A DNA stretch of 54,952 nt, filler included, from Sluysia triapertura (lineage: Eukaryota), in NCBI GenBank assembly GCA_046118255.1. It is 3 parts of 3 records of this genome, joined end to end, with 100 filler letters (N's around TTAATTAATTAA, not from the genome) between each part and the next. Parts side by side here need not be neighbours in the genome. Positions count along the whole stretch, not along the records: positions 43,880 to 54,952 come from JBJNIA010189320.1; 2 more parts are not named here. One strand, written 5' to 3'. The position numbers and the translations under genes are program-made. The notes beneath the pieces were generated by a model. It was not told the origin of the DNA and did not search any database. It saw only the letters and a list, made by a program, of their open reading frames with translations. Every line of letters begins with the position of its first letter. The first letter of the stretch is position 1. This document shows, one piece after another, positions 43,880-54,952 of this stretch.

Positions 43880-45339
43880 GTTATATAAAAATATATAGAG
43901 ATTCAGTTTTATTTGATTTTAGTTATTAAAAAGGGTTATTAAGAAACGAAAAACACCACAGAATCTTCGGAGGCATAACCGTGGTAACTATAGAACCATC
44001 ATACAATATTATATTTAACAATCTTGTGTGTGGTTAAGTTTAATGTGTATAGATTTAGTTTGTATGTATCTATTGTGTAATCCGTTAAATTTGTTTGTTT
44101 GAAATCACATATGTTTTATGTCGACTGAGTGGTTGTAATAAAAAGACCATACATATTACAGAGAGATAGACATGGTGTTGATGACCGAATGTTAAGAATA
44201 AAAATCACAAAATTGTGGTTTTAAGAACGCCATGAGGTTCTTGGAAAATTAACTCATTTGTATTTGCAACATTATATTGTTTATGAATGTTGAAATTAAG
44301 TAAACTAATAAATTTAATTATAGTTTGTTTACATTAATAGCTCCATTAAAAATCTATTATACAATATTTTAATTATGATGCTTTACAATGAAAAATTTCA
44401 GCTGAGATTTATTTCTGTGGATAGCATCATCTACATCTTCTACATCATACAAACATCAGATTTGATTCTAATAATTAAAGACTTTTGATTCACCCACATA
44501 TTTGTTTATATGATTTATTCATACTAAAAACTTGATGTTTTCTAGGAAATTTTAATTATGTAAAGGTTAATTAACTACAACCTATGTAAACAATAATAAT
44601 AATTTTAGATTTAAAAGTATCAAGTTAAAAAATTTTGGTATTAAAATTAATATCATTTTACACGAGCAATAATCGATATAAAAATTCGTCTTGATAACAC
44701 TATTCGTAAAGTTCGAAAATTTTAGATTTATCAATTTTTGTATTTACAAAAGTTCGACAAACATAAGAGGTTGTTTAATCCATTTTGGCCAGATAGCTTC
44801 CACAACTTTCTTATCTTTGCAGTCGTAAGTTTCTATATTATAACAGGATCCATTTCTGACTTAAAATACGCAAATTTTCCCGTTTAGAATTAATCCAGGC
44901 TTAAAATATTTATCAAAATATTCTAAACATTAAGGAAACCTTAATTTTAAAGTAATTTATTGTTATTACTATTATTATTATTATAAAGAATTTGTTGTAC
45001 ATTTTTACTGGTATTATGTAATAAACTGTTTTTATTACATAATTAATTCGTGAAGAATATATGCATAGTTTTTGTTATTCAAGGGAAAATAGCAGAGAAT
45101 TTCCATTCATTGACATTAGTGAGCTAAGACCACATCTTAAACGTAAATCCCCTAATAGTTCAGATCCTGTTGCTTTTACTTCCTTTCGATATAAATCACT
45201 GTCTAAGGGCGATATATATAGTTAATAATTAAAAAATTATTATGCCATAAGGAAATATACATTGAACTTTTCATGTGCAAGAATTAAAAATGAAACATGA
45301 ATGCATTGCAACAAATAATTGCAAAAATACATGCGCTAT

Positions 45340-47340
45340 CAGCATTGATCTAAAAGTTGCATTATTTAGAGTTGCAATAATGCAACATAATAAATAAATA
45401 AAATTCTCGTAAAATTGTACTTATGTGCACTACAATTGGACTTAAAATATATCCAGTCAGTTATAAAGTTTTTGGATTTTGATTACAAAAAAAATAATTT
45501 GAATTAATTACCTTTTTATTTTTTGATATATTGTTTTAACTACAATAAATTGACTCTGACATCATACAACTAGAAATTCGTGTAGTGAAATTCGACTTGA
45601 ATGGCTCAAGTGCCCATAATAGACACTTCACAGGAAGTAGTCTTACCACATAGGACTTCTTTAATTATTCGTACCATAATAATTATAAAAATGAAAATTG
45701 TATAAAATTACTATTTAATACAGATAATATTAATTCATATTTTTGTTACTTAGTTGATTTTTTTCTAATTATAATTATAATGAGAAAATATGAAACAATT
45801 AAAAACAATATCAAATTTATAATTATTATTTATAATTCAAAAACTTACTTTATTGAATTTTCAAATAGTACAAATCTTCAAAGGTACATAAAGTACAAAA
45901 GCATGTATCCAATCTTCTGTTTTGTTGAAATAATTTATTAATGGTAATTCCTAAATAATAGCAGTATAATTAAAAACTTAAGTAATAAAATACAATGAAA
46001 ACCACAATATTTATAAAAAATTGGTTTTTATATAGATATTTATATACTGATAAAAGTAAAATGAATCTTTTTGCATGATGTTTTCAATCCTCGTTTAATT
46101 GTTTGTAGGATTATCAATATTAAATGATTAAATTACATCTTTAGTGTTGGATCAATTTTTATAAATTGCATACATGAAATTTATTAGTTCTTTGAATATA
46201 TAACCCAAATATTTAAAATTGTGTGACGTTATATACTGAATATGAATGTAAATATGGAAATTGATGTATTGTTTGAAATTAATTAAAAATTTAATGATAC
46301 AATTACAGTTCTTACGAATGATTTATTTATTTATTTTGGATTCTACATTAATGTCTGTAACCTATTTTTTACAATAAAAATTTAACTAATAACACTTAGA
46401 ACATTAATGTGCTCCATTAAACTTTAATATATAATAATGATTATTTTTCATGTAAAGAGTTCAAAAGTATCAATAAAATCATTAAATTGATTACAAATTT
46501 AAGGTGTAATTTAATCATTTAATATAGATAATCCTACAAACAGGGATTGAAAAGATCATAAAAAAGGATTCATTTTACTTTTATCAGTATATAAATATCT
46601 ATATTAAAATCAATTTTTTATAAATATTGTAGTATTTTACTACCTAAGTTTTTTAATTATACTACTATCATTTAAGAATTATAATTAATAATTAGTTGAT
46701 TTCAACAAAATAGAAGTTATGAAGATTGAATAAATGCTTTTATACTTTATGTACCGTTGAAGATTTGTACTATTTGAAAATTCAATAAAGTAAGTTTTTG
46801 AATTATAAATAATAATTATAAATTTGATATTGTTTTTAATTATGCTTCATATTTTCTCATTATAGTTATAATTAGAGAAAAATGCAGCTAAGTAACAAAA
46901 ATATGAATTAATATTATCTGTATTAAATAGTAATTTTTTACAATTTTCATTTTTATAATTATTATGGTACGAATTTAGGAAAATAAATAAAATTTTCTGT
47001 TTGTAGTTGATACATGAGGATAAGTATGTCCAGTATACGAATGGTTAAAGAAGTCCTACATGGTAAGACTACTTCCTGTGAAAAGTGTCTATTATGGGGA
47101 CTTGAGCAATTCAAGTCGAATTTCTAGTTTATTAGATTAAAGCAAATGTCAAAATTCTATAAATTAATTGTTTCGTTATCGAAATTGAGGCTATTGAAAG
47201 ACAGCTGGTCTTATCGGCGGGACTAGATATTGCCCAAGTCTACTTGTGATGCAGTTAAGTTTAATTTTACGAGAATATTAATTATTTATTATGTTGGCAT
47301 TATCGAAATTCTAAAGAATGCAACTTTTAGATCATTGTTG
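45340..47340. repeat. Large imperfect inverted repeat (palindrome) with ~350-bp spacer
   Basis: About 45568-46143 is the reverse complement of about 46499-47129, including an ~85-bp identical block (45797-45881 vs 46757-46841). A more diverged outer pair lies at 45340-45458 and 47221-47340. Confidence 0.92.
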
Positions 47341-48430
47341 CAACTGCATTATGATAAATTAATTTGTTGACAAATTGTTTTAGTTTTAGGTTCAATTGTA
47401 GTGAAAGGTTTCAAACTTATATAAAGTTTTCTTATAAGATTTGATAAAAGCGTTACTGAAATTTTGACTTACTCGTGAGGATCTCTTCTGGTAGATATGT
47501 AATTAATGGTATATTCGTGTTACGTGACAATTACACCATTGATTAGTCATTGAGCTATATTATTTTAAAATTATTTGACGAACTTTTTAGACAAAATTAA
47601 AAACTTACTAACATAGTTAATATTCTTATAAAAAAACGTTTCACAAGTGTAATTGGTCCAATGAATGATAATAAAAGACAATAATAAAAATATGCACTTG
47701 ATAGAATAAAATATATAATTGAAAATATGAGTTTGATTATTTATGATTGTGCAGCTACCTTTAAAAACCTTTTAAAATGAAAAAAGTACAAAACCTATTA
47801 GAAACAAGCTTACTAATTGTATAGTTAATTTAAAATCAAGATCCTTTATAGCAATTGGCAACATAACGAGTGAAATCAATCAAAATTGGTTTTGTCATTA
47901 CGTTATTTCAGTCAAATTTTATAATTAATAAAGTTAGAATTTTCGTAGAACATTTTTTTGGTGGTTCTGACGTTTCGCTAAAGATCTTATAAAAACTGTT
48001 TGTAGAAAACAATTCTAACAATTTTTTTCCTGCTTTAATTAATAATAATTTTCATATTTTGAGCGTTCTTTTACATTGCTACTATTTTTCAACGGTAATA
48101 TGTGCCCTTAAACTTGACCGTTTTTACTAAGTTTTTTAATTGAAAGATAAATAATAATTTAACAAGTTGTTTTTAATTAATTCTAAGTTGAATTAATAAT
48201 TTTTTCAACAAATCATAATATAATGTACTTTATAATATACTTCAATAATATAATAAGCACACATAATGACGTGTAAAATGTACTACTTCACAAAATCATA
48301 GCGCATTTTCCGCAATTATTTGCACTTCAATTATGTTAATACTTAGAAACATAATTTCCTAGAAAAAATCCAGATAAGCGCGAAGTAGACTGATATTAAA
48401 AGATAAAAACATTTATAGATTATTTTAAAT

Positions 48431-49420
48431 TGGCTAGATGGATATGCTTTATAATTTTTAAACAATTTTTTGTTTATTATTTATTTTTAATAAGAACCGT
48501 TCACGAAGGCGTACAAAATTATTTATTGATAATTATATCTTTTAAATTTTGTACAGTGAACTACTTTATTATAGTGCTTAAGATATCTTAATTGAGGTTT
48601 ACGTTTAAAATTCGAACAATATAACTTAAACAATATAACTTGAAAGAGACACTTTAATAAAATACACATAAAATGGGTTTCATATTTATAATCGTAAAAT
48701 TTATAATAGAAAATCATGTAATTATGCAATGAAAGGAAACCACAGCAGCAAAAGCATCGCATCGCTAGACTTAATTTTATACCTCTGAACATCAGAAAAG
48801 TTTAAGATTTGACGCAGAATATAATTATCCATTATGGGCTCGAGGCAGAATATCACTATTTTATAGTCATACTTATTTCATTATTTTCTGCACTTTTTAC
48901 CTAGATAGGTATCATTTACTCGCTACCTGGAAAACCAATACATTTTCTGTCATACTATCTGATTTTGAGTTTCATTCCATTCTTGACTAGATGGATATAC
49001 TTTATATTTTTGTTATTATTAAATATCTTATTTTTATGATCATTTATGCAACTATGAATATCTTATATATTATATATTAATAAGCTTTATATTTGGTTAT
49101 TGAAATAATACATGAACTTATCCTTTTATGAATTTCCTTTTCTCTCTAGATGGATAAACTTTGTATTTTTAAATTTTAAAACTTTTTATTTTGAAAAACA
49201 ACTATATATCTGAAACATAATTATGGTTTCATTCATATCTTATCTCATTAATATCTATTTGGCTAGATGGATATCCTTTGTATATTTTAAATATCAAAAC
49301 ATATTTATTTTGAAAACAAAAACACTTTCAATGTTTCATGCAATATATTATTTCGTTGTCTTTTTGGCTAGATGGATAAGCTTTGTATATTTTAATTTTC
49401 AAAATATATTTATTTTCATT
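48431..49420 (+). repeat. Irregular direct-repeat array with core CTAGATGGATAwnCTTT
   Basis: Cores start at 48434, 48987, 49146, 49263 and 49368, with a degenerate one at 48901. Confidence 0.85.
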
Positions 49421-49929
49421 ATTATTTATATTTCCTTAATATATTTAAAATATATATCCTTATAAACTTTGATAATTCTAATTTCTATTATTCGTCTGCG
49501 TCCATTTATTTAAACTTATATTTTCCTAACGATAATTTCCTGAATTTGTTATACGCGGCTCATTTCTCAATGTTAGAGTAATCATACTATGTAGCTATAA
49601 TTACTGGATTATTCCGCGGTCGGTCCATTTTAAGACTTTTACTAATATTATAGTAATGATAATATTAATATAGAAAATTTATTAATTACTAATTAAAAAT
49701 CTTTATCCGTATGCATTACATAAATAATGATTTTCATATAAAAATTAGAGAATGATTACTCAAGATGTTACAATGTAAAAACATAAAAGTTAATAATTAA
49801 TAGTTTTTTCTCTGCAGGAGCAGCAGTAGTCCTCTGAACTCTAACTGGACACAGATTTGGGTTCAGTTCTGGAATTGTAACCCTTGTTGGAACTGGATCC
49901 ATGTTTACAGCACTGTGGCTAACTTTTGG

Positions 49930-51600
49930 TTAAAGAATATGAATGTGATTGAAGTAGATGAGATTTGGCATCTTCACCATATCCAAAGAGATGACTATCA
50001 AGACCTTTTAATAACACGTTTACTGAATTTGAATTTTTTAACGATAGTTAAATTTTCAGGGTTAATTTTCCAAATATTACGGTGAAAATTTTAATTTTAC
50101 AACGAACAACTTTACTTAAATGTTGAGAGAATGTTGAATATTTTAAAGAATTTTTTGCTGAATATGAGGGTAAGAAACAATTTTGTCAAATGGGGTTTTA
50201 ACATCAATTAATAGTAACGCTTGTCAAATTTAAAGAGTAAGTCGTTGTCGTTTAATTTTATCAGGAACATCAGAGTGATTGGAAAAAAGAGTGTGCTGAA
50301 CATCACAATCTACATCAATACCATTATCTTGGAGAAAGTTTGTAAGAAGTTTGAGTGCGAGATTGTTGCGCACAGTGATAAGACTAGAACTAAAAGTACA
50401 ATGATTAAGTACAGGTTGGCCATATTAACATTTGAATGTACATCTTCGACAATTTGTAGGAATGTTCAATTTCAAGTTCCGCCCAGTAAAGTTAAGTGCT
50501 TGAGTATTAGTTCGTGCTTTAAGTAGAAAAAAGAAAGTATTGTCAGGAGGTTCAGAATTCAATAACAATCCTTTTGTGATGCGAGATTGTGTAAGGGATG
50601 AGGAGAGCAGGGATTGACACTTCAAGGATTGCCAACGATATATATGAGATAACCCAGTTAGTTGATGGAAAACTTGAGTAAGGTTATACTTTTCATCCCT
50701 AACATTAGACAAAGCGTAGATTTAGATGGATACATTTCAGAAATTCAGTTGAGGGTTGTAATAAAGTCAGGATTCCGAAAGTATAGTTTTGCATCTAATT
50801 TAAGGTAATCAAGAGAAAAATAGCGTACCGTTTTATCAGTGGAGGCAAAAATTCGGAAGCAGTGAACTACTGTTTGAATTAAGTATTCACTGTTGAGAGA
50901 GTTAAAACCAAGCCCTCCCAAGTGGTATAGAAGAAATTAATAGAGGTAGAGCGCAAATGTATTACAAGGGCAAGTCGACGAAGGTTTCTGAAACTCTTAT
51001 TAAAGGAGGAAGCATCATTTTCAATATTTATATCATTAGAGTACATTTTTACCTTTCCAAGTTGGGCTCTAAAACGATAAGGAAATCGTGAAATTATAAA
51101 GATTTTTATTGCCCTAATTTTCTCTACTGGATGAAGGCGAGAGTTTAAAATCTTTGAACAATCAGAGAGAGCAATTTGAAGTAGAGATTCTATTTAGCAC
51201 TACCCATTTTTGAGCCGAGATAGGTGTAGTGATTTTTAGAATCAATAATAGGAACTTGAATGTTATAAATACTCAAAGGTGGTTCTACATTTTTATTCAT
51301 AGTGTTCAGATGACCACATTTATCAGGGCGAAATCTCAGATTGATATAAGAAGAAATAATAGAAAGTTCAAAGTATGTTGTAGTGATTGATGAGAATCAG
51401 ATACAATCATTATGTTATCAGCATAAGCAAGGCAGGTAAATGAATATCCTACATGACGAAACGGAGAGATTTCACGAATAAGAAATCGAGGTAAAGGTTC
51501 AATAGCAAGGGAGAAAAGAGTCATAGATAGGAGGAAGCCTTACTTAATAGGCAGGTGAGTTGTGCTGGCGTGTAAAAGGGTTTGTAGTGTATGAATGTGT
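49930..51600 (-). mobile_element. NeSL/R2-group non-LTR retrotransposon (RT + CCHC + restriction-like endonuclease), 5'-truncated and decayed
   Basis: LSMTLFSLAIEPL..CLAYADNIMI (RT domains 4-5), KARTN..CRRCTFKC*YGQPVLNHC..VRNN (CCHC knuckle and RHN), then KRQR..LLIDVKTPFD..KNSLKY..IFGKL (RLE). Multiple stops and frameshifts. Confidence 0.88.
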
Positions 51601-51675
51601 TCTAAGCAAGCATTAGGATGATTTAATGCTTTCTGTATTTGATTAATCAGAGATCCAGTAATTTACAGAGATACA

Positions 51676-51803
51676 AATTACTGTAAGATCATGAAATATT
51701 TAAGAAAAAGACCAAGTTCTTTCTGTAACAGAAATATTTTAAGGACTTTTGAGTACTTACTTTGTAGTAGATATGAGCGCAATATAAATTAATATATTAT
51801 TAT
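51676..51803 (+). mobile_element. L2 LINE 3' end, fourth copy
   Basis: Reverse-complement match to 30705-30850 (ATGAAATATTTAAGAAAA..GTTCTTTCTGTA..GAGTACTTACTTTGTAGTAGATATGAGCGCAATATAAATTAATATATTATTAT). Confidence 0.85.
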
Positions 51804-52326
51804 GCTGATAAGTATTATTCTAACTATTATCTGAAATTTTAATTTTATTATGTTCAAAAGATAAGAATTTGTTTGCCCAAAATAATAATGTAGCTCACCG
51901 ATTAAGCTGTGTCAAAAAAATAAGCCGTACAATAATGAGAGCTTATAACTAAGGAGGTAAAATCCTTGATTGCATCCTTAGTTTATTTTATGAAATAACA
52001 CTAATAGTAAATTGAGCATATGTATTGTGTAACTAATGTAATACTACACTATGGTTAAAGACATTTATGAATTATGCTTACGTATAGAAACATGTATAGA
52101 AACACGTCTAGCCTAATAGTTTTTAATAATATTTAAAATTCATGTAAATGAATAATCGATTTTATTACAATTAAAAAAATTTTAATTAAGTCAAATTTAT
52201 AAAATATTAAGTTTTAAATAATTATTTTAGTGCTTTCCGAAAAAAAACACCTTATATTTTGTTTCAATAATTTCTCAAATATATTATTTTACTGGGAAAA
52301 TTATTACGTTTCAAAAATCTTAAGAA

Positions 52327-53298
52327 ATGAATGATTCGAATGAATTAATGAAAAATTATGAAAAGGCAGTTACATTACATGATAATAGTCAATTCGAAGA
52401 TTTAATTAATTTTATAAAATTAAATGAATTTCCAATATCGCATCATAAACGTTTGATTAAGATGTATTATGATTGCCATTATAAATTGAATCCTGATTAC
52501 GTTGAAAACAAGAAGTTACATCCAGTTAAATGCTTCAGAATCAGGCAAAATATCCAATTACCACAAACCTTATTTAATGGTGAAAAGTTCCGGTATAATT
52601 TCTGTGAATCCGCTAGGAAAACTCTTGAATCTGCTTTTAAAACATACAAAGGTTATCCGCCTAGCCAAATAAAGAATGACATAATCAGATATTTTTCACT
52701 TCAACCCAGTCAAGTAACTAATTGGTTCAAAAATAAAAGACAACGTATTAAAAGGCAAACAATTAATAAACCAAATACAATTGAAACAGATAAATCATTT
52801 AGTCAGATTAGAAATGAAAACAGCAATAATTCCTGCTTATTTACTGTTGACAATATTAACTCACAAATTAATTCAAACGCGTATCATTCAATACCATTTA
52901 GTCACTTCAATAAGTCACTTAGTGAAAACAGTACTAATTCTGAATTATTGACTATCGAAAATAATAATTCACAAATTAGTTCCAACGCTTATCCTTCAAT
53001 ACCACAGTTACCCACCGAAAATGTAAGTCAAATTAATTACATAATGCCTAACATATGGAACAATAATGAATATTATCAAAGCATTTATACACCAAATTGC
53101 AATATTACTTATAATACTTCCAATAACCTAAATGCCCAAAATATTTATGATTATGTCATTCAACCTAACATAATGAATTATACTTCACCATTGAACTATC
53201 AAAATAACAATCAACAAAAATTTATAAATGATATAGATACTTATGAAAAACAAATGATGAATATGTACAATTTCTTAGATTTTCCAGACATTATTTGA
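52327..53298 (+). CDS. Divergent Six/sine oculis-class homeobox protein (partial SIX domain + K50 homeodomain + N/S/Q/Y-rich tail), single ORF
   Basis: Uninterrupted 323-aa ORF. HHKRLIKMYYDCHY..LHPVKCFRIRQNIQLPQTLFNGE aligns with the SIX-domain HxKLQxxWxxAHY..LGxVxKYRxRxKFPLPxTIWDGE, and the homeodomain ends QVTNWFKNKRQR. Confidence 0.9.
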   Translation: MNDSNELMKNYEKAVTLHDNSQFEDLINFIKLNEFPISHHKRLIKMYYDCHYKLNPDYVENKKLHPVKCFRIRQNIQLPQTLFNGEKFRYNFCESARKTLESAFKTYKGYPPSQIKNDIIRYFSLQPSQVTNWFKNKRQRIKRQTINKPNTIETDKSFSQIRNENSNNSCLFTVDNINSQINSNAYHSIPFSHFNKSLSENSTNSELLTIENNNSQISSNAYPSIPQLPTENVSQINYIMPNIWNNNEYYQSIYTPNCNITYNTSNNLNAQNIYDYVIQPNIMNYTSPLNYQNNNQQKFINDIDTYEKQMMNMYNFLDFPDII

Positions 53299-54102
53299 TA
53301 TATAATATACTTTTATAATTTCCATATTTTGTTTTTTAAACTTATAATGTTAAATAATTTGATTATCCCTTAATACCTAAAGCTGTTTAAGCTAAACCAT
53401 TTTTCAGTAAGTATAATTAGAGAAATTTCGCTTTATTACAGTAAACGTTACCAAATTAATTAATTAATTACAATTACAAACTTTTATAATTAATTTTTAT
53501 GGTAGCTTCGCGAACTTATCTATTGTTTCCCAATTTTACGTACGCATAAAAAACCCACAGATATAATATAATCAACGTTCTGTGATGATTTTAGTTTTCA
53601 GTTGTCACACAGTTTAATACAAAATATATTCATTATTGAAATGTACTGACTTAAAATTAAATCTAGCGCATCATTGTTTATCTTTTTGTTTTCTATTTCT
53701 TCATCTTGAATCCACAAAATTTAACATTATGCGTAAACAACTTACCACAATATTTAAATATCATTAGTTTGGTTACTTCAAATTTGTTTTAAATACTATT
53801 CAAATTAAGGAAATAAAGGAAATATTCAATTACCATATTAAAAATTACATTACTTTAATATAAATTACAGTAAAACTATATTAATTTCAAATTTAATAGA
53901 CTATCTTAAATTATTAGAAATGTTTAGATATTTTATTCAAAACAAATTCTCCAATTAAAATATAATGATTTTTCAAAAAGCTAAAATGATAGCTCTTTTA
54001 AATAATTTCATTGCATCTGTTTTGTTTGTATTTCGCATAAATTAAAAAAATGCCGAATGTATTCTTGTAACCAACAAATTGTACAATATACTTTATCAAT
54101 AT

Positions 54103-54249
54103 TTAATCGTATGTTTGCTCAATAGTTTCTACATAATCTTTTACCAAATCATCAATACTGAGGGTTTCGTCATATTTATTAGCAAAATTTTTCAACATAT
54201 CCATAGGTCTATATTGACCGCCATGCTGTAATATAGTTTCACGATATCT
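54103..54249 (-). CDS. MIPEP: M3-family peptidase, most like mitochondrial intermediate peptidase; last coding exon (not in the ORF track)
   Basis: tttttCAG|RYRETILQHGGQYRPMDMLKNFANKYDETLSIDDLVKDYVETIEQTYD* (phase 0) resembles the MIPEP C-terminus RYRxxxLxHGGxxxPxxM..SxDDxV. Another M3 peptidase (TOP/neurolysin) cannot be fully excluded. Confidence 0.75.
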   Translation of the reverse strand, partial: RYRETILQHGGQYRPMDMLKNFANKYDETLSIDDLVKDYVETIEQTYD

Positions 54250-54952
54250 CTGAAAAATTCATAATTAAATTTTATAAAATCCAGTCTTAATTAATATTAT
54301 ATCAACAATTTACAAATATTTGTAACATTTCCTTTTAATTACACAAAACAAATCCAGAAAAAAAACAAAATGCAAAATGTTTAATTTTACAGAAATACAT
54401 TTTTGATTTTATTCTTTATTCTAAAAATAGGCACACATTTCAAAAAAATCTTCGAAAGATCAAATGAAACATGTACGATAAATATTAAAAATTTTTTATT
54501 TAATAATATATAAACGTGATAAAAGAATATGAAATGGAACACGAACGGCATCCGACAATGAATTTTAAAGAATAAAATTGTAACTTGAGATAGAATTAAT
54601 ATTAAGATAAAATTAATTAATAAGTTATTAAATTTGAATTGTTGGGTTGGCATGGCAGCATCTGAAGCATCTGACTAAACATGACTTTATAATTACAATA
54701 TAATAATTGTGATTAATATAATAATAATAATAATATTAACAATTGAATTATATTTTATTCTATTGTACTTTTTTATTTTGTTTTATTACTCATGTTTGTA
54801 ATTTTTATAAATTTTAATTATGTAGAAAATTATATAAAAATAATTGTATAAATTTTGTATTTAATTTATTTATATTTATAATAAAATCAAGTTTAAAGTT
54901 ATTTTAAAAAATAAAAACAATATTTTAATTTGTTTCATTAAATCAATTTATT

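Follow-up and report, generated by a model that had tools for sequence, protein, structure and literature searches.

Six proteins of the canonical Six1/2 (sine oculis), Six3/6 (optix), and Six4/5 families share a SIX domain followed by a homeodomain with lysine at position 50 (K50). They normally act as Six-EYA pairs, with SIX helix 1 as the docking site. SIX helix 1 contacts EYA2, helix 6 and homeodomain helix 3 have been proposed to bind DNA, and canonical Six homeodomains have been noted for having no basic arm residues (PMC4901127). Divergent, lineage-restricted genes derived from Six are already known, among them vertebrate ANHX (anomalous homeobox) (PMC5094009), and the SINE-class genes of the neodermatan "SIX clade I" (PMC5322547); Octopus and other genomes have divergent copies as well. 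Here we describe a Six-class homeobox open reading frame (ORF) of Sluysia triapertura (assembly GCA_046118255.1), located at 52327-53298 on the plus strand of a 54,952-nucleotide stretch of this genome (the window) and within its 11-kb piece from JBJNIA010189320.1. The ORF shares the SIX domain and K50 homeodomain with the canonical families, to which it is ~30 to 35% identical, but it is without their diagnostic tetrapeptides and helix 1 and has an arginine at arm position 5 (Arg5). The reading that we favor, and that we hold with about even confidence, is that it is a functional, selection-maintained, 5'-truncated Six gene, most simply of cDNA origin.

An intact open reading frame in decayed surroundings

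The ORF is a single exon of 323 codons that begins with ATG and ends with a TGA stop codon. Directly 5' of it lie TAA (52321-52323) and GAA, and the ATG, which has a purine at -3, stands at the very beginning of the frame that opens after this in-frame stop. Both the ORF list and the sequence itself agree with the first-pass annotation, which had reported that 323 amino acids (aa) are encoded without a stop and that a TAA stands in frame two codons upstream of the ATG. The same six bases (52321-52326) contain an AG (52323-52324) that is a possible 3' splice or trans-splice acceptor.

Based on the base composition of the 11-kb piece (~25% G+C; stop frequency, 0.089 per codon), a stop is expected every ~11 codons on average, and the probability of 323 open codons is ~7e-14. 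The runner-up among all six frames of the piece is only 104 codons long. The ORF is beyond chance; it is a real, intact gene, and its length excludes a fortuitous open frame. As for the decayed transposable-element surroundings described in the annotation, a decayed reverse-transcriptase fragment lies upstream on the minus strand. Unitigs assembled independently from a public run matched 51848-52652 and 52639-54667 with zero differences and at single-copy depth. The exact protein sequence was absent from public protein collections.

The predicted product retains SIX helices 3 to 6 and a K50 homeodomain

Pfam matched aa 13-80 to SIX1_SD with 37.9 bits (gathering cutoff, 27.4), over profile positions 47-113 of 113, and aa 87-143 to Homeodomain with 35.3 bits. 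The SIX1_SD match ends 6 residues ahead of the homeodomain match, so that the SIX domain lies directly upstream of the homeodomain, as in other Six-class proteins. Only the C-terminal 60% of the SIX domain is encoded in the ORF, which falls short of the full six-helix domain with its EYA-binding helix 1. Alignment to full-length Six proteins placed the beginning of the ORF in the SIX helix 2-3 loop. The first-pass annotation had claimed that roughly the first third of the SIX domain is missing from the protein, and the profile match from position 47 confirms it; the lack of helices 1 and 2 within the ORF is likewise evident from both Pfam and the alignments.

The annotation had listed structure prediction as a check, and an AlphaFold2 model built from a 77-row alignment (mean predicted local distance difference test score, 90.7) consists of SIX helices 3 to 6 plus a homeodomain. 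The partial SIX domain spans 52333-52566 on the plus strand, with model helices at aa 3-19, 23-32, 37-54/56-61, and 66-75, and the 61-residue homeodomain spans 52579-52761 on the plus strand (aa 85-145), with helices at aa 94-106, 113-123, and 127-146. When solved structures were searched by sequence, the sole match over both domains was human SIX1 in the SIX1-EYA2 complex (4egc; E = 4.6e-15), which was also the only strong fold match found by Foldseek (E = 5.4e-6). A family hidden Markov model (HMM) built here scored the ORF with an E value of 1.8e-32 over HMM positions 53-182.

Within the homeodomain, W48, F49, K50, N51, R53, and R55 are kept. The lysine typical of the SINE/Six class is K135 of the protein, and the recognition helix reads WFKNKRQR, as had been noted at first pass. 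The departures from the family that were noted at the same time are equally clear in the alignments: FNGE replaces WDGE, the arm tetrapeptide KFRY replaces ETSY, ETVY, or QKTH, and the loop between homeodomain helices 1 and 2 has one extra residue (KTYKGYPP versus TH-NPYPS). Numbered from the conserved L16, F20, and W48, the N-terminal arm G-E-K-F-R-Y has Lys3 and Arg5, and in this respect the product departs from the non-basic arm of its class. We surveyed 152 proteins for this feature, comprising the best 150 matches plus two cluster members, and a basic residue at arm position 5 was found in none of the 139 in which the motif could be located.

In the 77-row family alignment, 8 columns are invariant and 31 near-invariant; the ORF retains all of the former and 19 of the latter, including every homeodomain DNA-contact residue. 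Most of the 12 changed near-invariant columns carry conservative replacements (W to Y/F, Y to F, I to L, D to N, and R to K). These results bear out the earlier description of a fast-evolving Six-class gene with its DNA-contact residues kept. The product is predicted to be a Six-class protein of variant architecture, with a truncated SIX domain, no intron in its gene, Arg5, a 61-residue homeodomain, and a long tail. As judged from its residues, it retains the parts proposed to bind DNA and, within the ORF, lacks the EYA contact; we infer that it may bind DNA and ignore EYA.

A long C-terminal tail keeps its frame open

The homeodomain is followed by a 178-aa tail (52762-53295, plus strand) that is rich in N, S, Q, I, and Y and that matched no family in a Pfam scan. 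Its three-base periodicity (chi-square, 32.8) exceeded that of all 246 of 246 non-coding control windows, and the probability of ~175 open codons, taken as the tail, is ~8e-8. Its composition is near background. A repeat search identified an in-frame direct repeat at 52815-53004 (plus strand), in which 82-nucleotide (nt) copies at 52815-52896 and 52923-53004 are 80% identical with a period of 108 nt. Given that the copies differ by 5 synonymous and 18 non-synonymous changes over 30 codons, the tail sequence is evolving freely while its frame stays open. The tail is possibly an activation region or a low-complexity region.

The closest relatives are Six genes of myxozoan cnidarians

A word-index protein search with aa 1-150 returned zero matches. 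An exhaustive phmmer search with the same residues against 1.84 billion representatives returned 621 Six-class proteins, with a best E value no better than 1e-28 and identities of typically 30 to 37%; the sole outlier was a 111-aa fragment at 43%. The top phmmer match, P0001, comes from a faulty gene model and scored highly because of segments duplicated within it; it was set aside as not being a close relative. The 43% fragment is KAF1743341 of Myxobolus squamalis (P0137), and a two-sequence profile search next retrieved a Thelohanellus kitauei protein annotated as "Homeobox protein SIX4" (P0170; 44% identity), which it ranked ahead of medusozoan and anthozoan Six proteins. These myxobolid proteins, at 42 to 44% identity over the C-terminal end of the SIX domain and the homeodomain, are the best matches found anywhere.

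The ORF and the myxobolid proteins also have at least 7 derived positions in common when aligned against the near-invariant family consensus. They share CHY in place of AHY, the loss of W-D from WDGE, GEK..YN in place of GEE..YC, E-S in homeodomain helix 1, F in place of Y at position 20, and NKRQR[IL]KR in place of NRRQRDR. In a maximum-likelihood tree under a site-heterogeneous model, in which M. squamalis was the only myxobolid included (T. kitauei was not in the tree), it formed a clade with the ORF at a support of 95/83. AT-richness is common to both as well, the myxobolid contigs being 25 to 35% G+C and the window piece ~25%. Taken together, the rank of the matches, the derived residues, and the clade place the ORF in the myxozoan Six lineage, albeit with some caution, both members of the clade being long branches. 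The AT-rich genome, too, is likely to be that of a myxozoan or another endocnidozoan parasite rather than a flatworm. The first-pass annotation had pointed to flatworms and other spiralians for comparison; this framing was not borne out, and the taxonomic frame is corrected by a signature shared with myxobolid Six genes. We found no literature on Six or EYA in Myxozoa.

The ORF nevertheless differs from its myxobolid relatives in several respects. The myxobolid genes encode SIX helices 1 and 2, including the motif GHLICICNHL, whereas the ORF does not; their open frames end 10 to 25 residues past the homeodomain, whereas the ORF carries its 178-aa tail. The myxobolid tetrapeptides are KTVY and KTLY compared to KFRY, and the arginine at arm position 5 and the extra loop residue are features of the ORF that set it apart from them. 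Beyond recognition-helix codons, nothing was shared between the 11-kb piece and the two myxobolid loci by blastn and tblastx.

The ORF fits no Six subfamily, largely as an effect of its lineage

The ORF had been described at first pass as fitting no Six subfamily. As a description, this stands. The subfamily HMMs gave it near-equal scores of 97.5, 103.8, and 91.3 bits, compared to >250 bits for clear members among the unclassified sequences scored in the same run, and the diagnostic tetrapeptide (ETSY, QKTH, or ETVY-ETIY) is absent, KFRY being found after FNGE. Six4/5 and Six3/6 were each fully supported in a 40-row tree, and the ORF fell within neither; its branch was saturated and lay close to the Six1/2 grade. 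Constraining the ORF to Six4/5 (P = 0.47) or to Six3/6 (P = 0.38) was not rejected by approximately unbiased (AU) tests, the terminal branch being saturated. Since the derived signature is shared by the myxobolid genes, the subfamily-less appearance marks a lineage rather than a unique invention, and it reflects in large part saturation within that lineage rather than a unique new class. That part of the earlier claim was not supported.

Other divergent Six-derived genes offer no closer affinity. By features, the nearest ESM-Atlas cluster was the ANHX cluster (score, 0.93). An Octopus sinensis SIX2-like protein (P0108) and an intronless ORF (P0015) are likewise divergent and outside the three families. 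However, ANHX, the SIX clade I genes, and these two sequences are 29 to 37% identical to the ORF, no better than canonical proteins; they belong to other phyla and show no specific relationship to it.

The myxobolid intron is missing from the locus, and the first SIX helices were not detected there

By aligning the myxobolid exons and searching with them piece by piece, we found that both myxobolid genes have the same structure: exon 1 encodes SIX helices 1 to 5, a phase-0 intron follows, and exon 2 starts with (N/S)LW..CHY. In T. kitauei, the upstream exon (4451-4747 of JWZT01004076.1) covers SIX profile positions 3-78, with helix 1 and the motif GHLICICNHL, and ends in KKLQ/gtaag (the slash marks the splice site); after an intron of ~1.5 kb ending in tttcag, exon 2 starts at 6264 with SLWFKCHY. 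The M. squamalis intron is 63 nt long within the same layout (KKLQ/NLWYACHY). The window sequence runs uninterrupted across this site (HKRLIKMYYDCHY), and the intron is absent.

In the course of this comparison, we noted that the public gene models of both myxobolid Six genes are incomplete or split. For M. squamalis (QWKW01002409.1, 1248-1960), the partial model KAF1743341 covers exon 2 only; exon 1, at 1248-1544, has an in-frame TGA at 1437-1439, which could be a sequencing error, a polymorphism, or the mark of a pseudogene. The T. kitauei gene (4451-6581) is divided between two models, a 104-aa SIX-domain protein and the 135-aa "SIX4" with a spurious first exon, and the true junction appears to run from KKLQ/gtaag at 4747/4748 to tttcag/AGT at 6264.

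Helices 1 and 2 were sought throughout the 8.4 kb from the edge of the piece to the ORF (43880-52326). A tblastn search with coral Six1/2 found no coding match to these helices in this range, and the exon 1 peptides of M. squamalis and T. kitauei gave background only, as did a BLOSUM profile with an empirical null. When a family HMM of 95 full-length SIX domains was run against all six-frame fragments, nothing besides the ORF itself scored above 4.4 bits. A sharper log-odds position-specific scoring matrix for helices 1 and 2 was uninformative. One candidate, the string LICICNIIL at 44253-44279 (plus strand), is identical to the myxobolid helix 1 sequence LICICNHLL at 7 of 9 positions; it has stops on both sides and no collinear continuation, and with an E value of 0.05 to 0.25 it is probably due to chance.

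Given that one cDNA-mediated, 5'-truncated event would remove both the intron and the 5' coding part, it is the simplest account of their joint absence. Accordingly, the favored reading holds that the gene would be an old cDNA-mediated copy, either retroposed or gene converted, that lost its 5' end and has come to use the ATG at 52327 as its start.

Weighing a cDNA origin against a hidden exon, a vertical orthologue, and a relic

Several points weigh against a selected gene of cDNA origin. The genome analysis covered the 11-kb piece; the ORF may be an orthologue or a paralogue, and a full-length copy or EYA may be encoded elsewhere in the genome. The AG at 52323-52324, two bases ahead of the ATG, could serve as the acceptor for an upstream exon or for a spliced leader. 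A divergent 40-aa exon for helices 1 and 2 could escape every search, since identity to canonical Six proteins is only ~30%, or could lie beyond 43880. The clade with the myxobolid gene unites long branches. There is no signal of purifying selection between the tail repeat copies, and the locus was present in no RNA run. Finally, no A-rich tract lies within ~1 kb 3' of the stop codon (the nearest is at 54358), and no target-site duplication was identified.

The AG also bears on the possibility of an ordinary full-length Six gene, in which a short upstream exon with a start codon and helices 1 and 2 would be spliced to 52323-52324, the ATG at 52327 would encode an internal methionine, the SIX domain would be complete, and EYA binding would be possible. 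We regard this as unlikely but as a serious contender. The AG is right before the ORF with T-rich sequence ahead of it, and in this case the in-frame TAA would belong to the intron. An exon border would be natural in the helix 2-3 loop, exactly where the break lies; helices 1 and 2 are kept in both nearest relatives, and the transposable-element block at 49680-51803 could be part of the intron. Moreover, the SIX domain's N-terminal portion is the least conserved part of the family, and for many genuine Six proteins the alignment to a cnidarian Six1/2 query does not begin until position ~45, so the failure to detect helices 1 and 2 is weak evidence. Against such an exon, however, tblastn, the 95-sequence HMM, the myxobolid peptides, and the profile all gave nothing above background in the 8.4 kb. 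It would also require two events, the loss of the ancestral intron and the gain of a new one at a position without a counterpart in the relatives or in coral Six1/2. The most striking claim, that of a Six protein uncoupled from EYA, would hinge on the absence of this exon.

The 90 nt at 52231-52320 were relevant to another account, in which a distant myxozoan lineage has the ORF as its only Six orthologue, inherited vertically. Helices 1 and 2 would then have been lost by point mutation, when the helix 2-3 loop acquired a nonsense change and translation came to start at the next ATG; the intron would have been lost separately, and 52231-52320 would be the decayed helices 1 and 2. These 30 in-frame codons are indeed stop free (expected number of stops, 2.7; P ~0.06), and their length up to the N-E-L motif fits the canonical and myxobolid spacing within one or two residues. 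An in-frame stop codon likewise interrupts this portion of the SIX domain in the M. squamalis assembly. However, in the expected register, the profile ranks the upstream peptide no higher than among the top 6% of background windows, and the peptide receives no score from the family HMM. The frame also lacks a start codon and is directly preceded by a TAG. The presence of decayed helices 1 and 2 at 52231-52320 is therefore unsupported, and we consider the account that invokes them improbable.

Whether the ORF is instead a non-functional relic depends on a different set of observations. On this account, a Six gene elsewhere in the genome, intact and just as divergent, would have given rise to a processed pseudogene that is truncated at its 5' end, still too young to have acquired stop codons, and not expressed as a protein. 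The ORF is intronless and 5' truncated relative to the myxobolid genes and adjoins non-long-terminal-repeat (non-LTR) retrotransposon debris, and the near-background composition of the tail, its freely diverging repeat, and the lack of the locus from RNA runs would all fit a relic. In contrast, every invariant structural and DNA-contact residue is intact, codon periodicity in the tail is strong, and 323 codons are open where stops average one per 11. The ATG, with its purine at -3, opens the frame right behind a stop, depth is single copy, no poly(A) tract lies within 1 kb of the stop, and no target-site duplication was identified. A relic is thus improbable in our view, if slightly less so than the vertical orthologue with mutated helices.

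These observations also bear on the age of the copy proposed in the favored reading. The frame has remained open despite long divergence, the closest representative being only ~37% identical apart from the 43% fragment. The intact frame and key residues weigh against a long-dead pseudogene, and the lack of a poly(A) tract and target-site duplication, together with the neat start behind a stop, weighs against a recent retrocopy. Intron loss and 5' truncation, both expected of a retrocopy, were found by comparison across species rather than with a parent in the same genome. The possibility of a retrogene, raised in the first-pass annotation, gains support: the intron and the N-terminal part of the two nearest relatives are both absent from the ORF. 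The poly(A) and target-site duplication hallmarks were not found.

What a truncated, selected Six protein would mean

Under the favored reading of a selected gene of cDNA origin, the protein would fold as SIX helices 3 to 6 plus a homeodomain. DNA would be bound via homeodomain helix 3 (K50, N51, and R53), probably together with SIX helix 6, and the regained basic arm (K3 and R5) could add contacts in the minor groove. Since docking of EYA through helix 1 would be impossible, activation would have to come from the protein's own tail or from other partners.

A bolder version of this model is that selection in a parasitic cnidarian has preserved a 5'-truncated Six retrocopy as a Six protein of a new kind, with helices 3 to 6, a homeodomain with a regained Arg5 arm, and an Asn-rich effector tail. 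Such a protein would need no EYA to bind Six-type sites, and it would take the place of the canonical Six-EYA module or else compete with a full-length paralogue as a natural dominant negative. We offer this version tentatively and consider it possible but doubtful. If true, a natural Six protein that is maintained by selection without helices 1 and 2 would test what the remaining SIX domain does alone, including the contribution of helix 6 to DNA specificity, and also how a developmental module comes apart in a parasite of extreme simplicity. If replacement were the case, it would have occurred in a body plan that has lost eyes, muscles, and nerves.

Other divergent Six-like sequences and the repeat surroundings

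Two further groups of divergent Six-like sequences were encountered during the searches. An ENA contig (ERZ25071824; ~40% G+C) from another animal encodes, at 10001-11425, an intronless 474-aa Six-like ORF (P0015/P0153) that has a long Ser/Thr-rich N terminus, no recognizable SIX helices 1 and 2, and a reverse-transcriptase gene nearby; it may be an independent case of the same truncated architecture. P0003/P0151, from ENA contigs of 2.3 to 2.7 kb, are very divergent and contain a partial SIX domain plus homeodomain twice in tandem; WDGE is lost, and FFRLKRNR is found instead of WFKNRRQR.

Upstream of the ORF, the depth profile and a repeat border at 51801-51803 delimit a unique-copy spacer (51804-52326, plus strand) that reaches from a repeat block to the ATG and presumably contains the promoter and 5' untranslated region. 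The high-copy repeat block itself (49680-51803, minus strand) lies outside the gene and contains a decayed non-LTR reverse transcriptase, with an RVT_1 match at 51339-51524 (minus strand) that has YADN in place of YADD. Summed contig depth is 250 to 1800 from 49680 to ~51850, compared to 15 to 60 over the gene. The block ends in a ~130-bp unit (51674-51803) whose summed depth is ~4e5 and whose two borders show loose ends in hundreds of contigs. This unit is a very abundant short repeat, like a short interspersed element or miniature inverted-repeat transposable element or the terminus of a long interspersed element. It had no tRNA or Rfam match, and Rfam and tRNA scans of the whole piece were empty. 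Farther upstream, 45654-45938 (plus strand) and 47044-46850 (minus strand) translate to a near-identical string of ~35 residues (...YHNNYKNENC.KLLFNTDNINSYFCYL...); these inverted copies of one repeat lie ~1 kb apart and may mark the two ends of a foldback or terminal-inverted-repeat element.

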